From sequence record PQ390715.1: a DNA stretch of 64,000 nucleotides; one strand, 5' to 3'. The stretch's first letter is position 1; every line of letters begins with the position of its first letter. The position numbers were made by a program, and so were the translations under genes. The notes beneath the pieces were generated by a model, which ran no database searches, was not told the origin of the DNA, and was given only the letters and a program-made list of their open reading frames with translations. Of this stretch, positions 7,101 to 61,112 are shown piece after piece.

Positions 7101-10100
7101 TAGTGGTCTTTGGGATATTGACGGAACTATTGGAGATAGCAGTACTGGAACTATTTTATTTGGTGATCGTCGTGGTCAATATGACAAATATAAAAGATTT
7201 GGTGTACAGCCATTCAAAATTACAAAAACTGGAAATAAAACATCTTCTGGTATTGATATTTGTGTGGTTGAATATATTGCACCTGAAATTTTAGGTTTAG
7301 TGTCTGGATCTTTAAATCATAGAGCAGAACCTTGGACATATGGTGATATGGGTGACATGGAATTTACATACATGAACACTACATTGTTTGCATATGACCA
7401 AATGATGCTTTTGTATAAAGCTAAACCAGCACAATTTGCTAACTATTTCTGGGATACCCGCAACGATAACTTAAAAGAAGTATTCACTGATGGTTCACAA
7501 TTCCTTTATGGTGATACACGTAAGCGTATTAATTTTGATAAAAATACAGTAGTTCATGGTGAAAATAGCACAAGAACAATTGGTTATCAAATGTTTGTAA
7601 GTGACCATTTGATGTATCAAAATAAAAATATTACCACCAAGTATGGGGATGTAGTTCGTTCTTCTTATATAAATGTTGGTCATAAAATTGGAGGATTTAC
7701 TAAAGCAGATCAGCTAACATTCAATGCTAAATCTTTCGGTCTTATTTCACAAGAAAACCAAACCATTGGTCTTGTTCGTTCTAATAATATCCGTGATGAG
7801 CAAATGAGTGCGATCAAAATTACTTGGAATGGTAGTGCATATCAGATTGATGGATATGATCTAGTTGGTGCTAAATTTAAATATAAACTTCCAGTAAAAA
7901 ATGGTAGAAAAGTAACTCTTAAATTGGAAAACCGTAATGTTGTTCATTATAATGAATGGAAGTCTGAAGCTTCAATTGAATATGGTAAAGTTTTCAATAG
8001 TTACCAAGAAGTTTATACTTTTATTTGTGGATATGGTGAATATCTTAAAGAACATGGTTGGATTTTTGAAGATGTAAATGATAGTGGTGCTCAACAAGAT
8101 TGGAACACTATTGCTAAAGATTTCGTGATCTGGAGTCAGAATTCTCTAGTAACTGGTGAATTTATTTCTTGTACCCCAAGTGCTGCAAACGCTAAATTTG
8201 GGGCAGACTTTGGTTCAGTACAATCTATTACGCAAAATAATGGTGGTGTATGGTCATTACTTGATGATAATAACCAAGGTATTCGCCAATATGAAATTGA
8301 AACTTCTCGTATTGGAAATATCTTCACTGTTAGAACTTTAGAATCTAATAAACGCATTGCATTGATTCGTTTAAGTTTGTGTTCATATGAACATGCTGTT
8401 ATTTTTGATGATAAAACTATTTTTGGTGATTACATTTATCAGCCAACATATGGTTCTATTCAAGAACTAATTAAAATGTATGGATATATTACTGGTTCAT
8501 GGACTGGTCGCCTACAAGCTCCTGGATTTATTATCTTGGAAGCTGGAACACTACCATCATTTGAAAAATTAGTGTCGGATTTCCAACATTATTATGATAG
8601 TGAAACTCCAGTAAGTGATGTACAATTACAAGAGTTGTCAAACCATTTGATTGGTTATCAATCTCGTGATTATCTACAGCGTATGATTAGTAGTGATGTT
8701 AGTCGTGTTGATTTCTATAAAGGATTCATTCACGATAAAGGTACTAACCAAGTTTTAGAACGTGTACTTCGTGTTTCTAAATCATATGACACTGATGAAT
8801 ATAAAGCATTACAAGAATGGGCATTTAAAATTGGTACATATGGTAATATTGATGGTAAGAAAAACCTTCAATTTAAACTAATCAATGACCAATTTAAACA
8901 ACAACCTCAAATGGTTTCTTTTGATGTAAATGCAACTTCAAATGGTAATGGTAATCATATTGTATACTTCGGTGAGCAAGGTAAAGATCCTCGTTGGATT
9001 ACACGTCCAAATGGTAAGTTCTCATTCCCAATGCGTAGTGGAAGAAGTGAAAACATCCAACTTCCAGATATTGGTCCAGTAACATTGGATGAAGTATCGT
9101 ACACAACAAAAGATTTCAGTACTGCATATAATGACCGCATAACTTATACTAATGGTAAAGGTGAAAATCCTGAATCTGTGTGGATGTTTAAAGACGGTAA
9201 TGGTTTGTGGAACATTTTTGAATTGGTTGATACTAATGTACAAATGGTTTCTATAACACCTATTGAAAATACCGATGTGTATGCTGAACAATTTTGTAAA
9301 GTAACTTTAACTGATAATGTACCACTTGAAGATGGTGATTATTATTATTTTGTTGATGAAACTAACTTTATGCCAGATACTTTAACAGTAGAAAGTCAAT
9401 ATTATACTGCTGGTTCTGATCCTAAAGTTATGGTAGTTCCATTTGACACTTCTATTGATATTGAATTTACTGATCCAGATACACGTCCACGTTTGTATCG
9501 TTATGTATCACGTTTTGCCAGTACTGATGAACGTCAAGCTTACATTGACAAGAAATATAGTTTTAAAGCACCACAAAGTACTTTATTTGATCGTCCAACG
9601 ACATATGATGAACGTACTAACATTACTGAGCTATATCTAAACGTTTATGACCCAATTAATGGTGTTATTCCAGGTGCGGCTATGCAAAACGTAACATATA
9701 CTTCACCAGTTGATCCTGCACAGTATAATAGTAATGGAGAGTTAATCCAGGCTTGGGGTGCTGATAAAGTTGGTCAAGTATGGTGGAACACTAGCACTGC
9801 ATTTTATTTGGATTATACTCGTGCAATTTATGACGCAGACGGTAATGTTGATATTGATGCAACCAATGAATACAAACGTTACAACTGGGGTCGTTTGTTA
9901 CCACATAGTACCATTGATGTGTTAGAGTGGGTTTGTTCACCAGTTGAGCCATATAACTGGGACAAATACTGTAAAGATGTTGCTAAGAAAAACAAAAATA
10001 ATACTATGTATCTACCAAGTGGAACTGCACTTGAAGATAATTATAGTACATTTTTGGAATATGATAGTTCAACTGATAGTTATGTGACAAAATACTATTT

Positions 10101-13100
10101 CTGGGTACGTGATACAATTTATGTACCACCACTACATACCAGAACGAAATCATGTACTGACATTGCTCGTATTATTAAAGATCCAACACAGCTAAACATT
10201 CCTTGGTTCGCTCCAATAAATGAAAACTCGTTTATTCTTAGTAATATGCAATTTAAAGTGAATGATGATACCAGTATTTTAACTGTTTCTTATTACATGG
10301 ATAGTACTGAAGTTGTTAAACATGACCAGTATCAACTATGTAAAGAAGGTGACAGCTATAACTTTAACCCACTAATTTGGGATTCAATGTGGAACTCACT
10401 AATTGGTCAAGAAACAACTGAATCAGGTTCTGTGATTAATTTATTATATCCAGATGTTGATAACGGTTTAGGATCAAACAAAACTTGGTTCCAAAATGTT
10501 ATAGAAGCTCGTAGAAACTTTGTAGAAAGTGCTAATAATTATTATAGGTCACAAAACATAACCACTAATAGTGTTGTTATGGAAGATGTGTTTAATGTTA
10601 AAACCACTGAAGTTAACCCTAATGAAGTTTCTTTCCGTGTGTTGTCTTACAATAATGAATTAGTTATTGCAGTTGAAAGTGATAAATTTAAAGAAAATGA
10701 CGCTGTTATTTTAAGTACTAGTGGATATCTACCAAATCCATTAACTTCTAGTGCTGTTTATTTTATTCACTTCGACGAAAATGGATATATTCAGTTAATG
10801 AATAGTCCAGCAAACGCGGGTAGTGTTGTTACTATAACGTTAGAAAACAAAGGTGAGGGACAACATAAAATGATTAAACAATCTGATTATGTTGAATCAC
10901 TAGGAACCTCATTAGACATGACTCAGTACTGGTCATATGCTGATTGGTATGATGTTGGATATGATAGTAACACGACTTATACTCAAGAGTCAAGCTTAGA
11001 AGATGCTAATACTAAAAACTACCAAGTTGGCGATATTATCAGAGTTACCGATAGTGAAAACATTTGGACATTGTATATTAAATCACAATCACGCGATTCA
11101 ATTTATTGGAAAGCGATTGGTCGTGAAAACAGTACAGTTGAACTCAATGATATGCTTTACGCAGATTATAGTGTTCATAATGATAATGGTTCACTAAGCA
11201 ATCGTGAAATCAACGTTCGTAAAGCACTAGCTTTACTCAAAAATTCTTTCGATTTACATCAAAGCGAAATTGTTTTTGATATGGTCAAATATGTACATGT
11301 TGAACAAAGTGTTGTGGATTGGGTATTTAAAACATCATATATCTATATTGTTGGTTTGGAACAATCATTAGTTCAAAACTATTCAAACGATAATTTGATT
11401 AATCAAATTGTTGAATATTTTGAAGAAGTTAAACCTTATAGAACTAAAATTCGTTCACAAATAGAGCAAAAGACATCTGATGATGATTTAATAAAAGGTC
11501 TATGTAATGATTTAGATCCTAATGGATATATTTTCGTTGACGGTTCTTGGATCAAAACTGAAAAAGATATTTGGGATTATGAGTACGCTCAATTTAATGA
11601 AATTACCCAAAAATGGGAACAGGTAGGTTCACTACCAAGTGATTTCGTTACACCAAATAGAAGATTCCAAGAAATTGATATTATTATGCATTATGATAAT
11701 ATTCAGTGTAAACCAAATGAAGATTTGGCAAGCATAAATGAATTAGTAAGTGTTAATAACAAATATCAATCCAATGAAAAGGATGCTGTTAGTAACTATG
11801 AATTACAACGTTATATATATTCTTTCCCAGAATATAGTGAAGAAACTTTCGATCTTCTTATTGCTTATCAAATGCAAATCTACTATCCAGAATTGGATGT
11901 AACACTAGGAACAGCATATGGCGTTAACCAGTGGTATAAAGACCATGCGGAAGATTTAGAAGCAACTGATGAATTCACTGCTACATTGGAACGTGTTTAT
12001 AAAGAATCAACGCATAACGATATGTTTACTGACCTTAGACAATATGTTCAGTATAACACATTGGCAAACCGTTTGAAACTTTATAAAGATATAAGTGATG
12101 AGAAAATTCACGATGAAGTTGGATGTGGATTTAGTGGACTTACTTATAATGACAATCCTAGTACTAGACTTCCATTAGGCTTTTCTTCTAGTAATGATTA
12201 TAACTATGGATATTTTGAAATAAGCAGTGAATTGTATCAAAAATACATTTCATTAATTAAAGATAAAAATCCTGACGCATCAGACTATGAAGTAAAAGTT
12301 AAACTTGAAGTTGAGTATGGTGTATATGTTTATCGTTATGATGAAGTAGGTGGTGATACCCGTTTCTATACTGATGCTATTCACGTATTAGCAGGTATGA
12401 GAGGGTTATTCGACAAAGACGCTACTGATAAGTACGAAAAAGCTGAAGAGATTCTTAGTAAGACCCCAATTGATATCTATGCAATTACAATGATTCCACG
12501 AAAATATGTTTACTTAAATGTTAACGGTGTATATCAAAGTATACCTGATGAACAAAGTATTGATGATTTCATGGAAGATTATTTTATCACAAATGGTGAA
12601 ATGGTTGAACTAGCTGAAATAAATCTTGATGATTTACCACTAGATCAAAATAATCCAATGTATTCTGATTATCAATATATACTTGATAGTATTACTGAAG
12701 CTAAGTACTTCAATGATATGAATGCATTTGATAACCTAGCATTGGAATCTCAAACTTCTTCAATAAAATGGGAAGTTAAAGATGATGAAGTTGATCCTTA
12801 TATTGTGGATATATCTGACATAAACCCTTCTGGGCGTGATGTTGGACAAATTAGATTTACAGTTGATGGATATGGGTTTGACAATGTATCTCTTGTACAA
12901 TTACGTGATAACAGCAGATATCAAACTGAAGGTATGGCAATTATCAATCCATATAAACATACAGAAGCAATTGTAAGTATTCCTTCATATGCTAAGATTG
13001 AAAATGATATTAATAAAACAACATCGAAGTTTGATGAAAAATATTTCTATCGTGTGAGATCTATTAATAGCTTAACTGAAGCAGAAATAGTTGACAATGA

Positions 13101-53799: not shown

Positions 53800-54018
53800 T
53801 TATTTTGAATTATACAAGCAGTACAGGTATACCAATGGAGTAAAATGCTCGGAATCTATTATATATATTAACTGAGTAACATATATTCCATATAGATCTC
53901 GTGATTTATCTCTGTACATTAACAATGATTTATTTAAGTAAGGATCAACCCAGTACTTAATATCATTGTACTTCAACGTGTTATTACGGTAACCTGACAG
54001 TTTCGAATTTTTATTCAA
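53800..54018 (-). CDS. Hypothetical protein
   Basis: 72-aa ORF overlapping the upstream stop codon. Confidence 0.5.
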   Translation of the reverse strand: MNKNSKLSGYRNNTLKYNDIKYWVDPYLNKSLLMYRDKSRDLYGIYVTQLIYIIDSEHFTPLVYLYCLYNSK

Positions 54019-54388
54019 TTTTCTTACAATTACTCAGTAAGTGAATGATATCATCAGCAGTGAATGGTCCCAATACCAGAACTTCTTCACCATTACCGAA
54101 AATGCTCAATGGTACTGATTGCTGACCAGCTAGATATTCAATTTGTTCCAGTTCGAAAATGTCATCAGCAGCATAAACTACCTGCTCCATTTCATTATCT
54201 TTAATCCATGACTGCCAATGTTCTTTAAACTTCTTAGCTTCGTATTCTTGAACATAGTTAGGTGATTCAGGGTTGTATTGATGTAACATAGTCATCCCAG
54301 CCATTACTAATTCTTTAGGGGATGGTGTAGAATCTTTCAGTACTACGATAGCTTGGATAGTTTTTACTTTAACGTCATTAGCAGCCAT
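54011..54388 (-). CDS. Pth2 (peptidyl-tRNA hydrolase 2)-fold protein, degenerate
   Basis: QAIVVLKD...W.SW...VVY.ADD..EL..I...A....VP.SI...VLVLGP...D.I follows the Pth2 pattern, but GKxxAQxxH and DAGxT are absent. Confidence 0.5.
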   Translation of the reverse strand: MAANDVKVKTIQAIVVLKDSTPSPKELVMAGMTMLHQYNPESPNYVQEYEAKKFKEHWQSWIKDNEMEQVVYAADDIFELEQIEYLAGQQSVPLSIFGNGEEVLVLGPFTADDIIHLLSNCKKIE

Positions 54389-54728: not shown

Positions 54729-55205
54729 TTATTTTAGAATGTATAAGTGTTTTTCTGCATTGACCAGTCGGTGATCAATGATTTCTTTGATAACGTTCCA
54801 GTTACCGCCGCCCAAATCGGCTCCAATTTTCGGGAAGTGTACATGAACATCTCGATCAACTTTACAAAAATAATTTAGATGTTTGAACACATCGTCGATT
54901 GCATCATAACTGACATATTTAGCACCGTCATTACCGTACATTTTTTGGGTAATACAGTTTGCAATAATCAAATTATCGTTAATTGCTGAATATGCAATTT
55001 GTCCAATTCTAAGAAATCCCATTTCCTTTTCATATGCTTTATAATCATCATATGCCATTGGGTAACGATTTCTTAGCTCTTTTGCAAAACCTGAACCCAT
55101 TTTACCCTGTGCGTTACAACCATGAGCAATTATATGTATTGCTGTTTTATCATCTGTAACAGTACTGAATAATTCAAACAGATTACCTCGGTGTTCATGA
55201 ATCAT
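54729..55205 (-). CDS. Macrodomain (ADP-ribose binding/hydrolase; T4 tk.4/Poa1-like)
   Basis: GNLF, IAHGCNAQGKMGSGFA..L...YP and FPKIGADLGGGNW. Confidence 0.9.
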   Translation of the reverse strand: MIHEHRGNLFELFSTVTDDKTAIHIIAHGCNAQGKMGSGFAKELRNRYPMAYDDYKAYEKEMGFLRIGQIAYSAINDNLIIANCITQKMYGNDGAKYVSYDAIDDVFKHLNYFCKVDRDVHVHFPKIGADLGGGNWNVIKEIIDHRLVNAEKHLYILK

Positions 55206-55543: not shown

Positions 55544-55795
55544 TTATTTAGGGTTGCCAGAAACCTTCACATATTTGATAAATGCCAAAATATCATCTTT
55601 ACTAAAAGATTTTACAATAAATTCGACAGCGGAATCATACTGTTCTTGTTTAGATAGATATTCTTTCATCTTGTTAATTTTAATCTGGGCTTTTTCTTTA
55701 GCTATTGAAATATCAGGAATTTTGAACTCTACTCCCAACGTATCAGCTAGTTGTTTTGCACGAGATGATACTTTTTCAATATCCATTAGTTCCAA
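55544..55795 (-). CDS. Hypothetical protein
   Basis: 83 aa overlapping the glutaredoxin stop codon. Confidence 0.6.
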   Translation of the reverse strand: MELMDIEKVSSRAKQLADTLGVEFKIPDISIAKEKAQIKINKMKEYLSKQEQYDSAVEFIVKSFSKDDILAFIKYVKVSGNPK

Positions 55796-56034
55796 CGACC
55801 TTCTTTAAGACCTTCAATAAACCCAGTACAACCACCTGGTACATAAATGTCATTTACGAAAATTTGAGGAACTTGACGAACTGGTTCACCACAAATTTCA
55901 GACAGTTTTGAACCATCGATACCTTCAGCAACAATATCTACAAACTCCATTTCAAATTTATTTTGTTCACATACAGCTTTTGCAGTGTCGCAAAATTTAC
56001 AACCAGTCTTGCGACCATAAATTTTAACTTTCAT
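55786..56034 (-). CDS. Glutaredoxin (T4 NrdC-like)
   Basis: CKFC redox motif, VRQVPQIFV and GGCT. Confidence 0.9.
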   Translation of the reverse strand: MKVKIYGRKTGCKFCDTAKAVCEQNKFEMEFVDIVAEGIDGSKLSEICGEPVRQVPQIFVNDIYVPGGCTGFIEGLKEGRWN

Positions 56035-56035
56035 G

Positions 56036-56468
56036 TTATTTCCTTCTATTTCTTTGAAAAGCTTTAACAGCTTTAATAATACTGTTACACATTCGTTCAG
56101 TCAAATACTTTTGACATTCTCGTACATCAATGTACATGAACTTATCCAATTCTGGATGACTCTTACCATATCTATTAGTGTAAGTACTTTTACAAACTAA
56201 TTCATCTGGTATTGGTTTGTCTTTGGCAGTATAAAAGAAAAGTACTAACCTTTTTCCCTTTCTATAGGATACATCACCAAGAAACAGAAGATCATCTTCA
56301 TCGATTTCGTATCCTGTCTCTTCGAAACATTCACGTACAGCAGCTTCTTTGAAAGTTTCATTACCCTCAGCTTTCCCTTTAGGTAAATCCCAATGATTCT
56401 GTCCGTGTTGTATGTCCGATAAGTATCTGACCATCACGATAAAATATTATACCACAACTATAACGCAT
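56036..56468 (-). pseudogene. nudE: T4 NudE-like NUDIX hydrolase split by a +1 frameshift
   Basis: ATG at 56468 gives MRYSCGIIFYRDGQILIGHTT; after one extra C (56405) GQNHWDLPKG...AAVRECFEETG continues. T4 NudE begins LSAGIIF...GRVTG...WDIPKG. Confidence 0.75.
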
Positions 56469-56545: not shown

Positions 56546-57658
56546 TTAGAACATTTGTTTGATTGCTTCGTAACGAAGTTCACAAACAAAATCACGAATT
56601 TCTGACGTTTCAAGTTCACCATCTTTGACCATTTGCTGAATATCAGGCAATTCAACATCAGTATAACGATCATAAACTTTAATAATTAGATCTTCAAGTT
56701 CTAAATCAATTTCTTTTCGCAAAATGAAGTATTCCAAAACTTTATAAAGGAATTCTTCACCTCCGTTATTTTTAATATTCATATCCAATAAAATATTACC
56801 CATTTCAATAGGGGTCTTTTTACGGAATGTTTTGATATCATCACGGAAACGTTTGATATAATTACTAAATTTAACATACTTAACTGGAACTTTAATAGCA
56901 CCGTTAAGTACTGAATCATTATTTACTTCTTCATTTTCAAGAAGAATAGACCACAGAAAATATGGTTTATATACATCTGTACAGTTCTCTGCAATATAAT
57001 CAATAAGGTCTAAATTCTTTTTGGTCAAAGATGTATTAAACACCTTTTCGTAATAACCAAATTTACTTAGCGTCTTAAGGAACTTTGCAGGCTTTTCTTC
57101 GGAAAATGCTTTTTCGAATTCCACAAACACACGGTCAGGAACAAGATGATTTAGCTCACCACTATTGACCATTCCAATAGCGAGTTCCTCAGTGCTTTCA
57201 TGGATAGTAAAGTCAGAATAACGAGTAGCAAATCGAGCAAGACGTAACACACGTAATGGATCTTCTTTAAAATGGTCAGACACATGACGTAGTACCTTGT
57301 TCTTGATATCAGCTTTACCACCGTATGGGTCAATGTGAATTTGTAGTACTGGATCATACGAAATTGCATTTATTGTTAGGTCACGGCGATACAAATCTTG
57401 TTCGAGTGTTACGCCTTTTGTATCCACTTCAAAGCCACCATATCCAGTACCAGTTTTACGCTCAGTACGGGCTAATGCGTGTTCATTACCTTCTGGACTT
57501 AGATATACAGGGAAATCCTTACCTACTTGCTTATAGCCAATACTTTGCAAGTACTTAATATCAGATTCAGTTGCTCCGACAATGACATAATCTTTGTCTT
57601 TTGCACGAAGACCCATTAAACGGTCACGGACGTAGCCACCAACCAAATACTTTTTCAT
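56546..57658 (-). CDS. cca: CCA-adding tRNA nucleotidyltransferase (class II), HD domain absent
   Basis: YLVGGYVRD...KDKD, VGKDFPV, ALARTERK, DL.RRDLTINA and EDPLRVLR.ARF. Confidence 0.92.
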   Translation of the reverse strand: MKKYLVGGYVRDRLMGLRAKDKDYVIVGATESDIKYLQSIGYKQVGKDFPVYLSPEGNEHALARTERKTGTGYGGFEVDTKGVTLEQDLYRRDLTINAISYDPVLQIHIDPYGGKADIKNKVLRHVSDHFKEDPLRVLRLARFATRYSDFTIHESTEELAIGMVNSGELNHLVPDRVFVEFEKAFSEEKPAKFLKTLSKFGYYEKVFNTSLTKKNLDLIDYIAENCTDVYKPYFLWSILLENEEVNNDSVLNGAIKVPVKYVKFSNYIKRFRDDIKTFRKKTPIEMGNILLDMNIKNNGGEEFLYKVLEYFILRKEIDLELEDLIIKVYDRYTDVELPDIQQMVKDGELETSEIRDFVCELRYEAIKQMF

Positions 57659-57793: not shown

Positions 57794-58216
57794 TTAAATT
57801 AATCTATCACGTAGACGGTCGTAATATTTTTCGTGTATAGCTAGTATACACTGATATGCAGAATAGTCAATGCCAAATGTATCATCAATGAACATGTACT
57901 GATCAAGTGTTTCTGGTCCATTATCATCAACTGGTAATGTCCCTTCTTTTTTTGATAGGGTGTGCCACATCAACTCACTTTCAATATGGTGAGTTGCGTA
58001 TGTCAATTCAATCTTACTTTTTCTTAGTAAAATTAACAATTCATCATTGTCGTCGAGTGCATTACGAAATTTAATACGAACAGTACCCTGAAAATTATTA
58101 GTGTACATAACACGATGTTGATTATATGTAACTAAACCACGTCTTTCAGTACTGATTTCGTGTTCAGCAAAGTACTTTAACGTTTCATTAAATTTTGGAA
58201 TTTTAGTAACGTCCAA
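57794..58216 (-). CDS. Hypothetical protein, paralog A of tandem pair
   Basis: C-terminal GTLPV...LDQYMFIDDTFGIDYSAYQ.I. Confidence 0.75.
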   Translation of the reverse strand: MDVTKIPKFNETLKYFAEHEISTERRGLVTYNQHRVMYTNNFQGTVRIKFRNALDDNDELLILLRKSKIELTYATHHIESELMWHTLSKKEGTLPVDDNGPETLDQYMFIDDTFGIDYSAYQCILAIHEKYYDRLRDRLI

Positions 58217-58619
58217 TCACATAATCCTCATAAAGTTTGTATACCCTCATTATACTCTGATATGTATCAAAGTCAATGCCAAAGGTATCATCAATGAACT
58301 GATATTGCAAAAACTCTTCCTCTGTAGCAGCAATAGGAAGAGTACCGTTTCGTTGTTCTGTTGATTGAACATCCTCAATATACATCAACACTATACTTTC
58401 ATCCAGATTTATATCTATCATAAAAACATCTTCACTATAAAATATGTTATATGTACGGATGAAGAGATTTCCTGTTCTATCATAACTTGACACGTGTGTT
58501 TCATAATACATTTTATCTAAACTAAAGAACAAACCTGTACTATCTGGCTTTTTAGTATTTTTTAATTTAATTTCGATAGCATCAATCATAGGTTTAATAT
58601 CAAACTTTTTCATAGACAA
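58203..58619 (-). CDS. Hypothetical protein, paralog B of tandem pair
   Basis: C-terminal GTLPI...FLQYQFIDDTFGIDFDTYQ.I. Confidence 0.75.
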   Translation of the reverse strand: MSMKKFDIKPMIDAIEIKLKNTKKPDSTGLFFSLDKMYYETHVSSYDRTGNLFIRTYNIFYSEDVFMIDINLDESIVLMYIEDVQSTEQRNGTLPIAATEEEFLQYQFIDDTFGIDFDTYQSIMRVYKLYEDYVIGRY

Positions 58620-59220: not shown

Positions 59221-59249
59221 GAAAAGGGACAGAATTAATCTGTCCCTTT
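59221..59249 (-). terminator. Intrinsic terminator after HPF
   Basis: AAAGGGACAGA-TTAAT-TCTGTCCCTTT-TC on the minus strand. Confidence 0.85.
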
Positions 59250-59257
59250 AGTATATA

Positions 59258-59590
59258 TTACTCTTCGTTTTCTGTCAAATCATCAAGAACTGGGTGTTCT
59301 GGATGGTTTCGGCGGTGTAATTTAATGCTTTTGTCTTTACTGAATACAGTTTCCATTTTTTCAAATGAATCACCAATTGCTTTGTATAAATCTGCTGCAT
59401 CGGCAGTAACTGATTTACTACCTGATGTTAGAGTCACAGAGTATTGAGACTTATGCTCTTTCTTCACATGAACTTCAATATCCATTACAGTTGAAGTACG
59501 GAACTTTTCAAGACATTTAGCACCATCGTAAATTGCATCTTGAATTGCTGTAGTAAAATCAACATTACCTTGAATATTTAATTTTAGCAT
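59258..59590 (-). CDS. hpf: Ribosome hibernation promoting factor (HPF/RaiA, S30AE family)
   Basis: LNIQG-NVDFTTAIQD.I....LEKF...V.V.......A.A.DLYKAI.....K.E aligns by eye with E. coli HPF. Confidence 0.7.
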   Translation of the reverse strand: MLKLNIQGNVDFTTAIQDAIYDGAKCLEKFRTSTVMDIEVHVKKEHKSQYSVTLTSGSKSVTADAADLYKAIGDSFEKMETVFSKDKSIKLHRRNHPEHPVLDDLTENEE

Positions 59591-59606: not shown

Positions 59607-60533
59607 TTAGAGTGAACTTAACAACAAATCTGCTCGGTTTGTAACTTGACGATACCATAAGGAATTCATTATTTCTTTTTTAAATTTCTTAGGGTTATCA
59701 TTTTTTACACTGTTCCAAAGTTTATTAAACGAAGCTAACTTATCTACTCCCATTGTATAGCACATTTCAAAAAGAATACGTTGTTGTTCTTTGGTCAGAT
59801 TTACTGCTTGTTTTTTCTGCATCAATAATAAAAAGTCATCATATGTTCTTTTCATATCTTGCATTAAAAGTTTGTTGGCTTGAGCTTTGGTAATACCGTT
59901 TCTGTACTTGATAGCATCAGATTCTTTTCTTCCCAAATAATGCCCATAACCGATTGTATAATTACCTTTCATATCCTTGTAAGGATGAAATTTAGAATTG
60001 TGGAAAGGAACTCCGACTTTCCCACCAAGTAAACGGCGTTTGTTCTTGGACTGAAATTCAATTGAACCTTCAGCTTCTTTGATGTGATTGACAATTTCTG
60101 GATCATTATAATCAAACTGTACAGTCACATCTGGTAACAATACGTTCTTCAAATCCTCTTTTGTTGGGATAAAGATACCCTGAGAAGTATGAAGAGTAGC
60201 ATTTAAATTGATATTTTTCAACAAAATAACATACTCTTCAAGTTGTACATTTTTAGGTTTAAACTTTTTAGCAATAGAATAATAACTATCACCAGGTTGA
60301 ACCGTATAATGCTTCTCGCCGCGTGGAACATCCTTTGATATTTCTACCTTTGGTAATTCCTGCTTTTGAATTTGCGTAACTTGTGGTTTTAAATTGTGTA
60401 CCTGACTTTCGTCCGATGATGATACACGATCATTTTGAGAAAAACCATAAAATCCAATCGCAGCGACAAGTACTGTGCAAACTAGAACACCATAAGTAGT
60501 CTTAGTTTTCAGTGCTTTTTTCGCTTGTTTCAA
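59607..60533 (-). CDS. Membrane-anchored LysM + T4-type (GH24) lysozyme
   Basis: Basic N-terminus and TM helix, LysM (YTVQPGDSYYSIAKKF...L..IN), lysozyme IKEAEG...D..G..TIGYGH and SLWYRQV.NRA; TTG start at 60533 after GGAGG. Confidence 0.8.
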   Translation of the reverse strand: MKQAKKALKTKTTYGVLVCTVLVAAIGFYGFSQNDRVSSSDESQVHNLKPQVTQIQKQELPKVEISKDVPRGEKHYTVQPGDSYYSIAKKFKPKNVQLEEYVILLKNINLNATLHTSQGIFIPTKEDLKNVLLPDVTVQFDYNDPEIVNHIKEAEGSIEFQSKNKRRLLGGKVGVPFHNSKFHPYKDMKGNYTIGYGHYLGRKESDAIKYRNGITKAQANKLLMQDMKRTYDDFLLLMQKKQAVNLTKEQQRILFEMCYTMGVDKLASFNKLWNSVKNDNPKKFKKEIMNSLWYRQVTNRADLLLSSL

Positions 60534-60537
60534 AACG

Positions 60538-60605
60538 CCTCCTTTGTTGATTGTTAAGATGGGCAATCACAAAGATGGCAAAGAGGCCATTTGCAAAAGC
60601 CTCAT
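60538..60605 (-). promoter_or_regulatory. Structured 5' leader with anti-SD hairpin
   Basis: CTTTGTGATTG pairs with CAATCA(A)CAAAG abutting GAGG; alternative helices GAGGC/GCCTC and ATGGC/GCCAT. Confidence 0.55.
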
Positions 60606-60701: not shown

Positions 60702-61112
60702 TTAATCGTAGTAGGTTCTACCTACAGTGATGTGATATTTAAAGTACTTGGTTGGTAGTCCTAGTTCATTTCTAATATGTGTGATGAAATCATCTTCAAA
60801 TTCAATGATAAAGAATGAACCTGGATTCTTTTTATCTTTTACTATCTCAATACAAGGATTGAACTTTATCTTTACTTTCATTCCATCGTATTTTTTCCAG
60901 TACTCTGGATTTGGTGGCACTTCACCACGAACGATACTGACATGTGCTCCCCATTGTGGGTCTTTAATATCAATATGTAAGTCAGTTCTGATGAAGTACT
61001 GGTAGTATCTAACCAACTGTAATGGAAGTTGTAGTACTAACCAGAAGTCCTTCTTCTTTTTCATAGTGCCACGATCTGGATCATACACCAGAGTTCCTTC
61101 CATATCAATCAT
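60702..61112 (-). CDS. 2H phosphoesterase-superfamily protein
   Basis: Two Hx(S/T) motifs followed by hydrophobic residues: AH57VSIV and YH127ITVG, 70 residues apart in 136 aa. Confidence 0.7.
   Translation of the reverse strand: MIDMEGTLVYDPDRGTMKKKKDFWLVLQLPLQLVRYYQYFIRTDLHIDIKDPQWGAHVSIVRGEVPPNPEYWKKYDGMKVKIKFNPCIEIVKDKKNPGSFFIIEFEDDFITHIRNELGLPTKYFKYHITVGRTYYD

Follow-up and report, generated by a model that had tools for sequence, protein, structure and literature searches.

Gene M2K_0588 of Escherichia phage SHEFM2K lies on the minus strand of the 64-kb stretch of sequence record PQ390715.1 analyzed here, which is referred to as the window (window position = SHEFM2K record position - 248000). 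The phage is a jumbo myovirus of 348 kb that belongs to the 121Q/PBECO4 (Asteriusvirus) type of the Rak2-like group. Judged from its sequence, the M2K_0588 protein belongs to a named family, 2H-SAK (Pfam PF22547), the Swiss Army Knife 2H phosphoesterase domain, of which it is a typical member. The same comparisons indicate that it is not an Acb1, the 2H protein that phages deploy against the cyclic oligonucleotide-based antiphage signaling system (CBASS). We give an even chance to the proposal that the enzyme is a cyclic phosphodiesterase that heals the ends of tRNA or other RNA.

Family membership, catalytic motifs and predicted fold

The interval 60702-61112 read on the minus strand is one exact-fit open reading frame (ORF) of 136 amino acids, while the plus-strand reading is riddled with stops. 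The gene and its two catalytic motifs are located as follows.

60702-61112, minus strand: 2H-SAK family phosphoesterase gene M2K_0588 (ORF and translation, phrog_12204, PF22547, structure models)
60936-60944, minus strand: first catalytic motif, His57-Val58-Ser59, in predicted strand 57-62 (sequence, alignment, models)
60726-60734, minus strand: second catalytic motif, His127-Ile128-Thr129, in predicted strand 126-132 (sequence, alignment, models)

Both motifs, HVS and HIT, have hydrophobic flanks, and they were found at the places where the initial annotation, made from the letters of the DNA and giving no strand, had put them in the 136-residue protein. A motif pair of this kind would be poor evidence for a 2H enzyme if taken alone. 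M2K_0588 is the only ORF in the window that has one, and a similar pair occurs in two unrelated ORFs of the whole 352-kb sister genome (OR844650.1). These two were dropped as 2H genes, having no 2H or Acb1 match. The pair in M2K_0588 is more than a chance occurrence because His57 and His127 are invariant and the second residue after each of them is Ser or Thr in 100% of the family members. In an alignment of 113 diverse members with a mean column identity of 19%, the two histidines were the sole invariant columns (113/113). Position +2 after His57 was occupied by Ser in 85 members and Thr in 28, and position +2 after His127 by Thr in 110 and Ser in three. Two conserved H-x-T/S motifs with hydrophobic neighbors, the mark of the 2H superfamily, were present across the 113 members. 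Conservation of at least 90% was also observed at G6, P12, G63, W72, R114, G118 and T129, and the conserved aromatic residues include Y10 (88%), W24 (89%), Y36, Y37, W54 (80%) and W72 (98%). The tail that follows the second histidine has 9 residues in the M2K_0588 protein, which is also the family median, and reaches 25 residues or more in 12 of the 113 proteins.

The M2K_0588 protein scored 25.6 bits (E 1.6e-5) against PF22547. This value is 1.4 bits under the curated gathering threshold of 27 bits, and the alignment spans only the C-terminal third. Its two H-x-S/T motifs, its stand-alone architecture, a size that fits the range of about 130-170 amino acids and its association with RNA-repair genes are all as in 2H-SAK. 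PF22547 was matched by each of 23 relatives (E <=0.001, best 3.9e-10), and no other Pfam family was matched. The representative of the cluster to which the M2K_0588 protein is 96% identical carries PF22547 in a precomputed table, and the UniRef name of the ortholog from Yersinia phage fHe-Yen9-04 is 2H-SAK. A word-indexed search identified 28 relatives. An exhaustive profile search returned 1072 cluster representatives (50% identity) at E <=1e-3, 455 of them at <=1e-10, and nearly all were stand-alone proteins of 130-170 amino acids. The family is therefore large, and it is almost confined to jumbo phages. It was reportedly defined computationally by Burroughs and Aravind in 2016 (NAR 44:8525), and the name "2H-SAK" was not found in the literature searched. 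No NCBIfam model matched the M2K_0588 protein or seven of its relatives. In GenBank the gene is a "hypothetical protein", the ortholog of 121Q gp531, and its product matches phrog_12204, to which no function is assigned there, over the full length (4e-67). The gene is carried by 77 phage records; nearly all of them annotate it as "hypothetical protein", and in none is it identified as a 2H enzyme.

Two AlphaFold2 models were built, with predicted local distance difference test (pLDDT) scores of 91.0 (23 sequences) and 93.6 (110 sequences). Both place the motifs on beta-strands 57-62 and 126-132, within two similar strand-strand-helix-strand halves. When the models were compared with the Protein Data Bank (PDB) using Foldseek, the credible matches were all 2H enzymes: Acb1 of Erwinia phage FBB1, a phosphodiesterase of Burkholderia phage BCSR5, Usb1 and LigT. 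The Foldseek probability reached 0.97, and every PDB match was weak (E at least 0.04, template modeling (TM) score at most 0.48). The ranking differed between the models, with Acb1 first for one and Usb1 first for the better one. The Acb1 structure 7t26 was retrieved at E 0.04 and TM 0.48; for BFVD proteins that bear the name Acb1, E was 0.004-0.07. When every PDB chain was searched by sequence, using the single protein and profiles of 23 and 113 sequences, no 2H structure was matched, and no literature was found on the BCSR5 phosphodiesterase structures (9Q2Y/9Q2G). Since the only credible matches are 2H enzymes, all weak and in unstable order, the models support a 2H fold, and 2H-SAK, a family without a solved structure, has no special structural affinity to Acb1. 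The absence of a 2H fold had been named beforehand as an outcome that would count against the assignment, and the credible Foldseek matches were 2H enzymes only, all of them weak. The description of the protein as a stand-alone 2H phosphoesterase is thus borne out by PF22547 membership, by the conservation of both histidines in 113 of 113 members and by models that retrieve 2H enzymes. The accompanying suggestion of a distinct family was correct, yet that family had already been named.

Comparison with Acb1

The hallmarks of Acb1 are an HxT/HxT tetrad, the stacking aromatic residues Y12, W74, F107 and W147, the adenine-reading residue E141, and a C-terminal lid, formed by residues 145-152, which covers the bound ligand (PMC9117128). 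Like Acb1 from T4 (57B, NP_049750.1) and from Erwinia phage FBB1 (7T26/7T27), the M2K_0588 protein is phage-encoded, stand-alone and predicted to adopt a compact 2H fold. Both have an H-x-T/S tetrad (HxS/HxT in the M2K_0588 protein), which is common to the whole 2H superfamily and does not discriminate, and the spacing between the histidines is close (70 residues versus 69 in Acb1). The ends of the proteins differ. The first histidine is preceded by 56 residues in the M2K_0588 protein and by 43 in Acb1, whereas the second is followed by 9 residues as opposed to about 39-40 in Acb1-type proteins. A C-terminal lid is impossible because the protein ends 9 residues after the second histidine, and there are no counterparts of W147 or E141. 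Sequence searches across every PDB chain detected no homology to Acb1, whether the query was the single sequence or the 23- or 113-sequence profile. This agrees with the initial annotation, which had seen little similarity to T4 57B beyond the motifs.

A genuine Acb1-type gene was available for comparison in a Rak2-like phage. The Erwinia phage Hallingskeid has a 143-amino-acid ORF (L051:3548-3979) directly upstream of a Sir2-Nudix pair. The sequence of its product can be matched to that of FBB1 Acb1 (7t26) over both His motifs (E 0.0018), and its second histidine is followed by 40 residues. Comparison of the 2H-SAK family profile with this protein gave an hhalign probability of 0.4%, and blastp found nothing at E <=100. 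The genomic contexts also differ, as Acb1-type genes adjoin Sir2-Nudix. At least 15 genomes of related jumbo phages carry an Acb1-type gene and a 2H-SAK gene, 40-50 kb apart. They are the following.

Genomes with both genes: fHe-Yen9-03/04, GAP32, 7t3, Munch, PHA46, fENko-Kae01, CBB, XbC2, pEa_SNUABM_12/44/47/49/50, BF

Since the two genes are found in the same genomes, they represent separate, co-existing families and are not orthologs, and their joint presence argues against redundancy. The suggestion of an Acb1-like anti-CBASS role in the initial annotation is consequently poorly supported, considering the missing sequence or profile link, the lack of room for a lid and the genuine Acb1-type genes that occur alongside 2H-SAK. 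The 121Q-type phages have 2H-SAK alone. The whole of the sister genome OR844650.1, the parts of 121Q that were covered and the window contained neither an Acb1-type sequence (best tblastn E 1.4) nor another 2H gene. Hallingskeid is the opposite case: it has an Acb1-type gene, and 2H-SAK is missing from the syntenic site. This reciprocal pattern leaves a small door open to some functional overlap with Acb1.

Several records annotate homologs of the Hallingskeid Acb1-type protein as "RNA ligase" or "structural protein". Phage 121Q keeps Sir2-Nudix without an Acb1-type gene, and Escherichia phage EJP2 has an Acb1-type gene (75% identical). The deoxynucleoside monophosphate kinase of the window was tried as a route to the T-even Acb1 locus and returned only T5-type kinases. 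The supplements of PMC7824862 and PMC9117128 contained nothing for these phages.

Gene neighborhoods in the window and in relatives

In Rak2-like phages, as seen at 16 loci, the 2H-SAK gene is part of a conserved block on one strand. Its order is RNA ligase (-3 kb), DUF2828 (-1.2 kb), 2H, lysozyme, HPF, CCA nucleotidyltransferase, Nudix, YqeY, Macro and PTH2. The RNA ligase and DUF2828/DUF7788 genes precede the same block, which includes the CCA enzyme, in 15 of 16 other Rak2-like loci, many of which also have YqeY, and the lysozyme gene is a syntenic neighbor of the 2H gene in all Rak2-like phages. In the window the block comprises these features.

59607-60566, minus strand: LysM plus phage lysozyme, directly downstream of the 2H gene (Phage_lysozyme 1e-11, LysM 3e-5)
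59258-59590, minus strand: HPF/RaiA-type ribosome hibernation factor homolog (Ribosomal_S30AE 4e-9; RefSeq name in 121Q)
56546-57658, minus strand: CCA-adding/poly(A)-polymerase-type tRNA nucleotidyltransferase (PolyA_pol 3e-18, PolyA_pol_RNAbd 4e-8)
56036-56437, minus strand: Nudix hydrolase, NudE-type by its 121Q name (NUDIX 1e-12)
55786-56034, minus strand: glutaredoxin (Pfam Glutaredoxin 2e-8)
54729-55205, minus strand: Macro-domain protein related to ADP-ribose 1''-phosphate phosphatases (PDB sequence matches)
54011-54388, minus strand: diverged PTH2-like ORF, tentative, 125 amino acids, annotated as hypothetical (sister-genome ortholog)

The CCA-type nucleotidyltransferase, in which no HD domain was detected with Pfam, is conserved downstream of the 2H gene in the Rak2-like loci and in a Vibrio jumbo phage. 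The protein encoded at 54729-55205 matched solved macrodomains (8e-16) and an ADP-ribose 1''-phosphate phosphatase (9e-7) in the PDB sequence search; its Pfam Macro score was weak (16 bits, under the threshold), the SHEFM2K annotation is just "phosphatase", and its orthologs are kept in the block. The ORF at 54011-54388 had no direct Pfam or PDB match. Its sister-genome ortholog shares 31% identity (E 1e-16) with an ORF labeled PF01981 in another locus (L003), and the window ORF probably encodes a diverged peptidyl-tRNA hydrolase 2 (PTH2). The 121Q type is without the adjacent RNA ligase, DUF2828/DUF7788 and YqeY seen in other Rak2-like phages (L027 versus L028-L042), and it has lost these three genes of the ancestral block. 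The RNA-repair genes near M2K_0588 in SHEFM2K are only that of the CCA enzyme (3 kb) and that of RlaP, an RNA-repair-pathway Pol-beta nucleotidyltransferase located 12.7 kb upstream on the same strand. RlaP is encoded by M2K_0617, annotated as "nucleotidyltransferase", at 321787-323019 of the SHEFM2K record (L007:1788-3020), outside the window (PF10127, 3e-16). Genes for a T4-type RnlA ligase and a polynucleotide kinase, as well as the Sir2-Nudix pair, are found elsewhere in 121Q.

Related genes were also observed near 2H-SAK in more distant phages. In Bacillus phage G a Macro gene is found 3 kb away (+3 kb), and in Atu_ph07 YqeY is two genes off and Macro is 5 kb off (-5 kb). The Vibrio jumbo phage has 2H-SAK between tRNA genes and the genes for HPF, tRNA nucleotidyltransferase and NADAR. 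Among metagenomic members, the gene of P0044, on a distant phage contig (L024), starts 6 bp after RlaP, that of P0113 is two genes from an RNA ligase, that of P0145 shares its contig with a polynucleotide kinase and a tRNA_bind protein, and P0035 is a fusion of 2H-SAK to YqeY. YqeY is a tRNA-affinity module in the GlnRS of Deinococcus (PMC1865053). An association of PF22547 with RNA-repair genes was thus found in the Rak2-like loci and in three distant members. A different context, that of nucleotide/NAD metabolism, unlike the Rak2-like block, is seen in a T4-like contig of 155 kb (L047), where 2H-SAK comes after an HD phosphohydrolase and before a MazG-cytidylyltransferase-like (NMNAT-type) fusion (9027-9767, 11800-12732).

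Several additional observations were made on the block and its surroundings. The DUF2828/DUF7788 protein (L006:8002-9528, L003:6222-7814) has 510-530 amino acids, and its gene always separates the RNA ligase gene from that of the 2H protein. It may represent the Ro/TROVE-like scaffold for RNA repair that has been discussed in jumbo phages. Neither this protein nor the PTH2-like ORF had a PDB sequence match. Between the CCA enzyme and HPF genes of the window, two adjacent minus-strand ORFs (57794-58216 and 58203-58619; 140 and 138 amino acids) overlap by 14 nt. Both belong to PHROG 20693 and have a "GTLP...F(I/L)DDTFGID...Y" region near the C terminus, so they look like tandem paralogs. In the 121Q type the roughly 12 kb from RlaP to the 2H gene are occupied by small ORFs and by tail-fiber, spanin, HNH and Dps-like genes.

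The start of M2K_0588 lies 7 nt past the stop of the upstream ORF and is preceded by an AGGT element, and a 135-nt AT-rich spacer separates the gene from the LysM-lysozyme gene downstream. Promoter-like hexamers around M2K_0588 were no commoner than in shuffled sequence, and no transcription unit is therefore claimed from them. No tRNA or Rfam elements were found near the gene. Just past the HPF stop codon (59223-59249) there is a hairpin with a perfect 11-bp stem and flanking A and T runs. It is the only strong terminator-like site within 3 kb and may end a transcription unit to which the 2H, lysozyme and HPF genes belong.

Proposed function and alternatives

The chemistry, substrate and pathway that we infer for the M2K_0588 enzyme are as follows. 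The protein would be a metal-independent cyclic phosphodiesterase that works like other 2H enzymes, His57 and His127 serving as the acid/base pair while the phosphate is held by Ser59 and Thr129. Metal-independent defense RNases of the host would cut tRNA or other RNA leaving 2',3'-cyclic phosphates, and these ends would be opened by the 2H-SAK enzyme. The repair could then be finished by the phage's CCA-type nucleotidyltransferase, Macro or other phosphatases, RlaP, RnlA-type ligase and polynucleotide kinase. Roles in RNA-end healing and in ADP-ribose metabolism have both been proposed for jumbo-phage 2H domains (PMC7824862, PMC9503650). RNA healing had been offered in the initial annotation as an alternative to the anti-CBASS role; it proved to be the better fit to the conserved neighborhood, even if the step from neighborhood to function is still inferential.

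A number of points weigh against this proposal. The literature search found no biochemistry for any 2H-SAK member. The 121Q type keeps the 2H gene without an adjacent RNA ligase, DUF2828 or YqeY, and its phages already own a T4-type polynucleotide kinase. T4 polynucleotide kinase heals cyclic ends. A strictly ligase-coupled role is therefore not required. Four to five distant lineages (L043-L046, L048-L050) have no informative neighbors of the kinds described above. In favor of the proposal, six of 10 independent lineages have 2H-SAK within 10 kb of these neighbor families, versus only 10.5% of an Asteriusvirus genome with the same hidden Markov models, a comparison that is indicative only, as the family set and the rough baseline were picked after the data had been seen. 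Part of the synteny may also be mere inheritance within one clade, because the neighborhood holds the lysozyme and many unassigned ORFs as well.

Another substrate to be considered is ADP-ribose cyclic phosphate (ADPr>P), the by-product that forms when KptA/Tpt1 or sirtuin-type enzymes use NAD to take 2'-phosphates off RNA. Opening of the cyclic phosphate by the 2H enzyme would be followed by removal of the 1''-phosphate by Macro, and Nudix would split the ADP-ribose. The three members of this classical chain are found within 6 kb on one strand of the window, 2H-SAK is again accompanied by Macro in phage G and Atu_ph07 and by NADAR in the Vibrio phage and fHe-Yen9-04, 121Q has Sir2 adjoining Nudix, and the pathway has been proposed for phages (PMC9503650, PMC7824862). 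However, Macro and 2H are never adjacent but 3-6 kb apart, no KptA/Tpt1 gene is named in the 121Q annotation outside 100-185 kb, and the YqeY fusion and the adjacency to RlaP or RNA ligase suggest that the substrate is RNA itself. We regard ADPr>P opening as rather unlikely, although it is not exclusive of RNA-end healing and the two roles are compatible. The trimming of RNA 3' ends as by Usb1, or 2',5'/3',5' transesterification of the LigT type, would go beyond the simple hydrolysis of a cyclic phosphate, with damaged 3' nucleotides of tRNA being removed or remodeled before CCA re-addition. Usb1 (6D2Z, 5V1M), a 2H enzyme that acts on RNA 3' ends, was the top PDB fold match of the better model, LigT appeared in both Foldseek searches, and the HD-less CCA-type nucleotidyltransferase is a conserved neighbor. 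Escherichia coli LigT/ThpR (5LDI, 4QAK; PMC4201822) and the cyclic phosphodiesterase domains of fungal and plant tRNA ligases share the 2H fold and the proposed opening of RNA 2',3'-cyclic phosphates. Nevertheless, all fold matches are weak: Usb1 was matched at E 0.046 and TM 0.40 with about 11% identity, and it is eukaryotic, about 50 residues longer and found in an unrelated context; LigT was matched at TM 0.41-0.46 and Foldseek E 0.3-1.6, without sequence similarity in the PDB searches, so that neither sequence nor close structural similarity links it to the phage-specific M2K_0588 protein. The latter is shorter in every comparison (30-40 residues with respect to LigT/ThpR, and 50-70 when set against Usb1 or LigT), and no sequence feature separates trimming from hydrolysis. 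A function of this type is very improbable.

The enzyme could instead be an Acb1-like immune-evasion nuclease of a separate family, degrading a cyclic oligonucleotide or another nucleotide signal of the host, possibly one that resists Acb1. In favor of this, the phage protein is a small 2H enzyme that stands alone, its best fold matches include Acb1 structures (7t26, BFVD), it is the only 2H enzyme of 121Q-type phages, which have no Acb1-type gene, Hallingskeid shows the converse arrangement, and in L047 the gene adjoins an HD phosphohydrolase. Other evidence speaks against it. The PDB matches have E of at least 0.04 and TM below 0.5 and come in an unstable order, with Usb1 first for the better model; sequence and profile similarity to Acb1 is lacking, including that to the Acb1-type phage protein; the tail of 9 residues has no lid and no equivalent of W147 or E141; at least 15 genomes hold both genes, against redundancy; and no defense-related or anti-defense neighbors were seen. 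An Acb1-like, signal-degrading role is a weaker reading than RNA-end healing, and we consider it improbable. A related idea, also improbable, is that 2H-SAK is a second, independently evolved counter-defense nuclease that destroys a nucleotide- or ADP-ribose-derived immune signal which Acb1 cannot cut. If true, it would explain why so many jumbo phages keep both genes and why the 121Q type keeps 2H-SAK alone.

The family and its likely role were already in the literature and databases; what deserves note is how large the family is, that it co-exists with Acb1 and that it is found in a conserved tRNA/ADP-ribose island. A phage gene annotated as "hypothetical" now has a place in a defined enzyme family whose catalytic tetrad is conserved, and 2H-SAK is marked as a 2H enzyme family whose substrate merits finding. 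Recognition that it is separate from Acb1 and co-exists with it prevents mis-annotation as "anti-CBASS". The gene sits in a conserved translation-maintenance/ADP-ribose island that includes RNA ligase, CCA enzyme, HPF, PTH2, YqeY, Macro and Nudix, and this island has the appearance of a toolkit with which the phage counters attacks on tRNA by the host.

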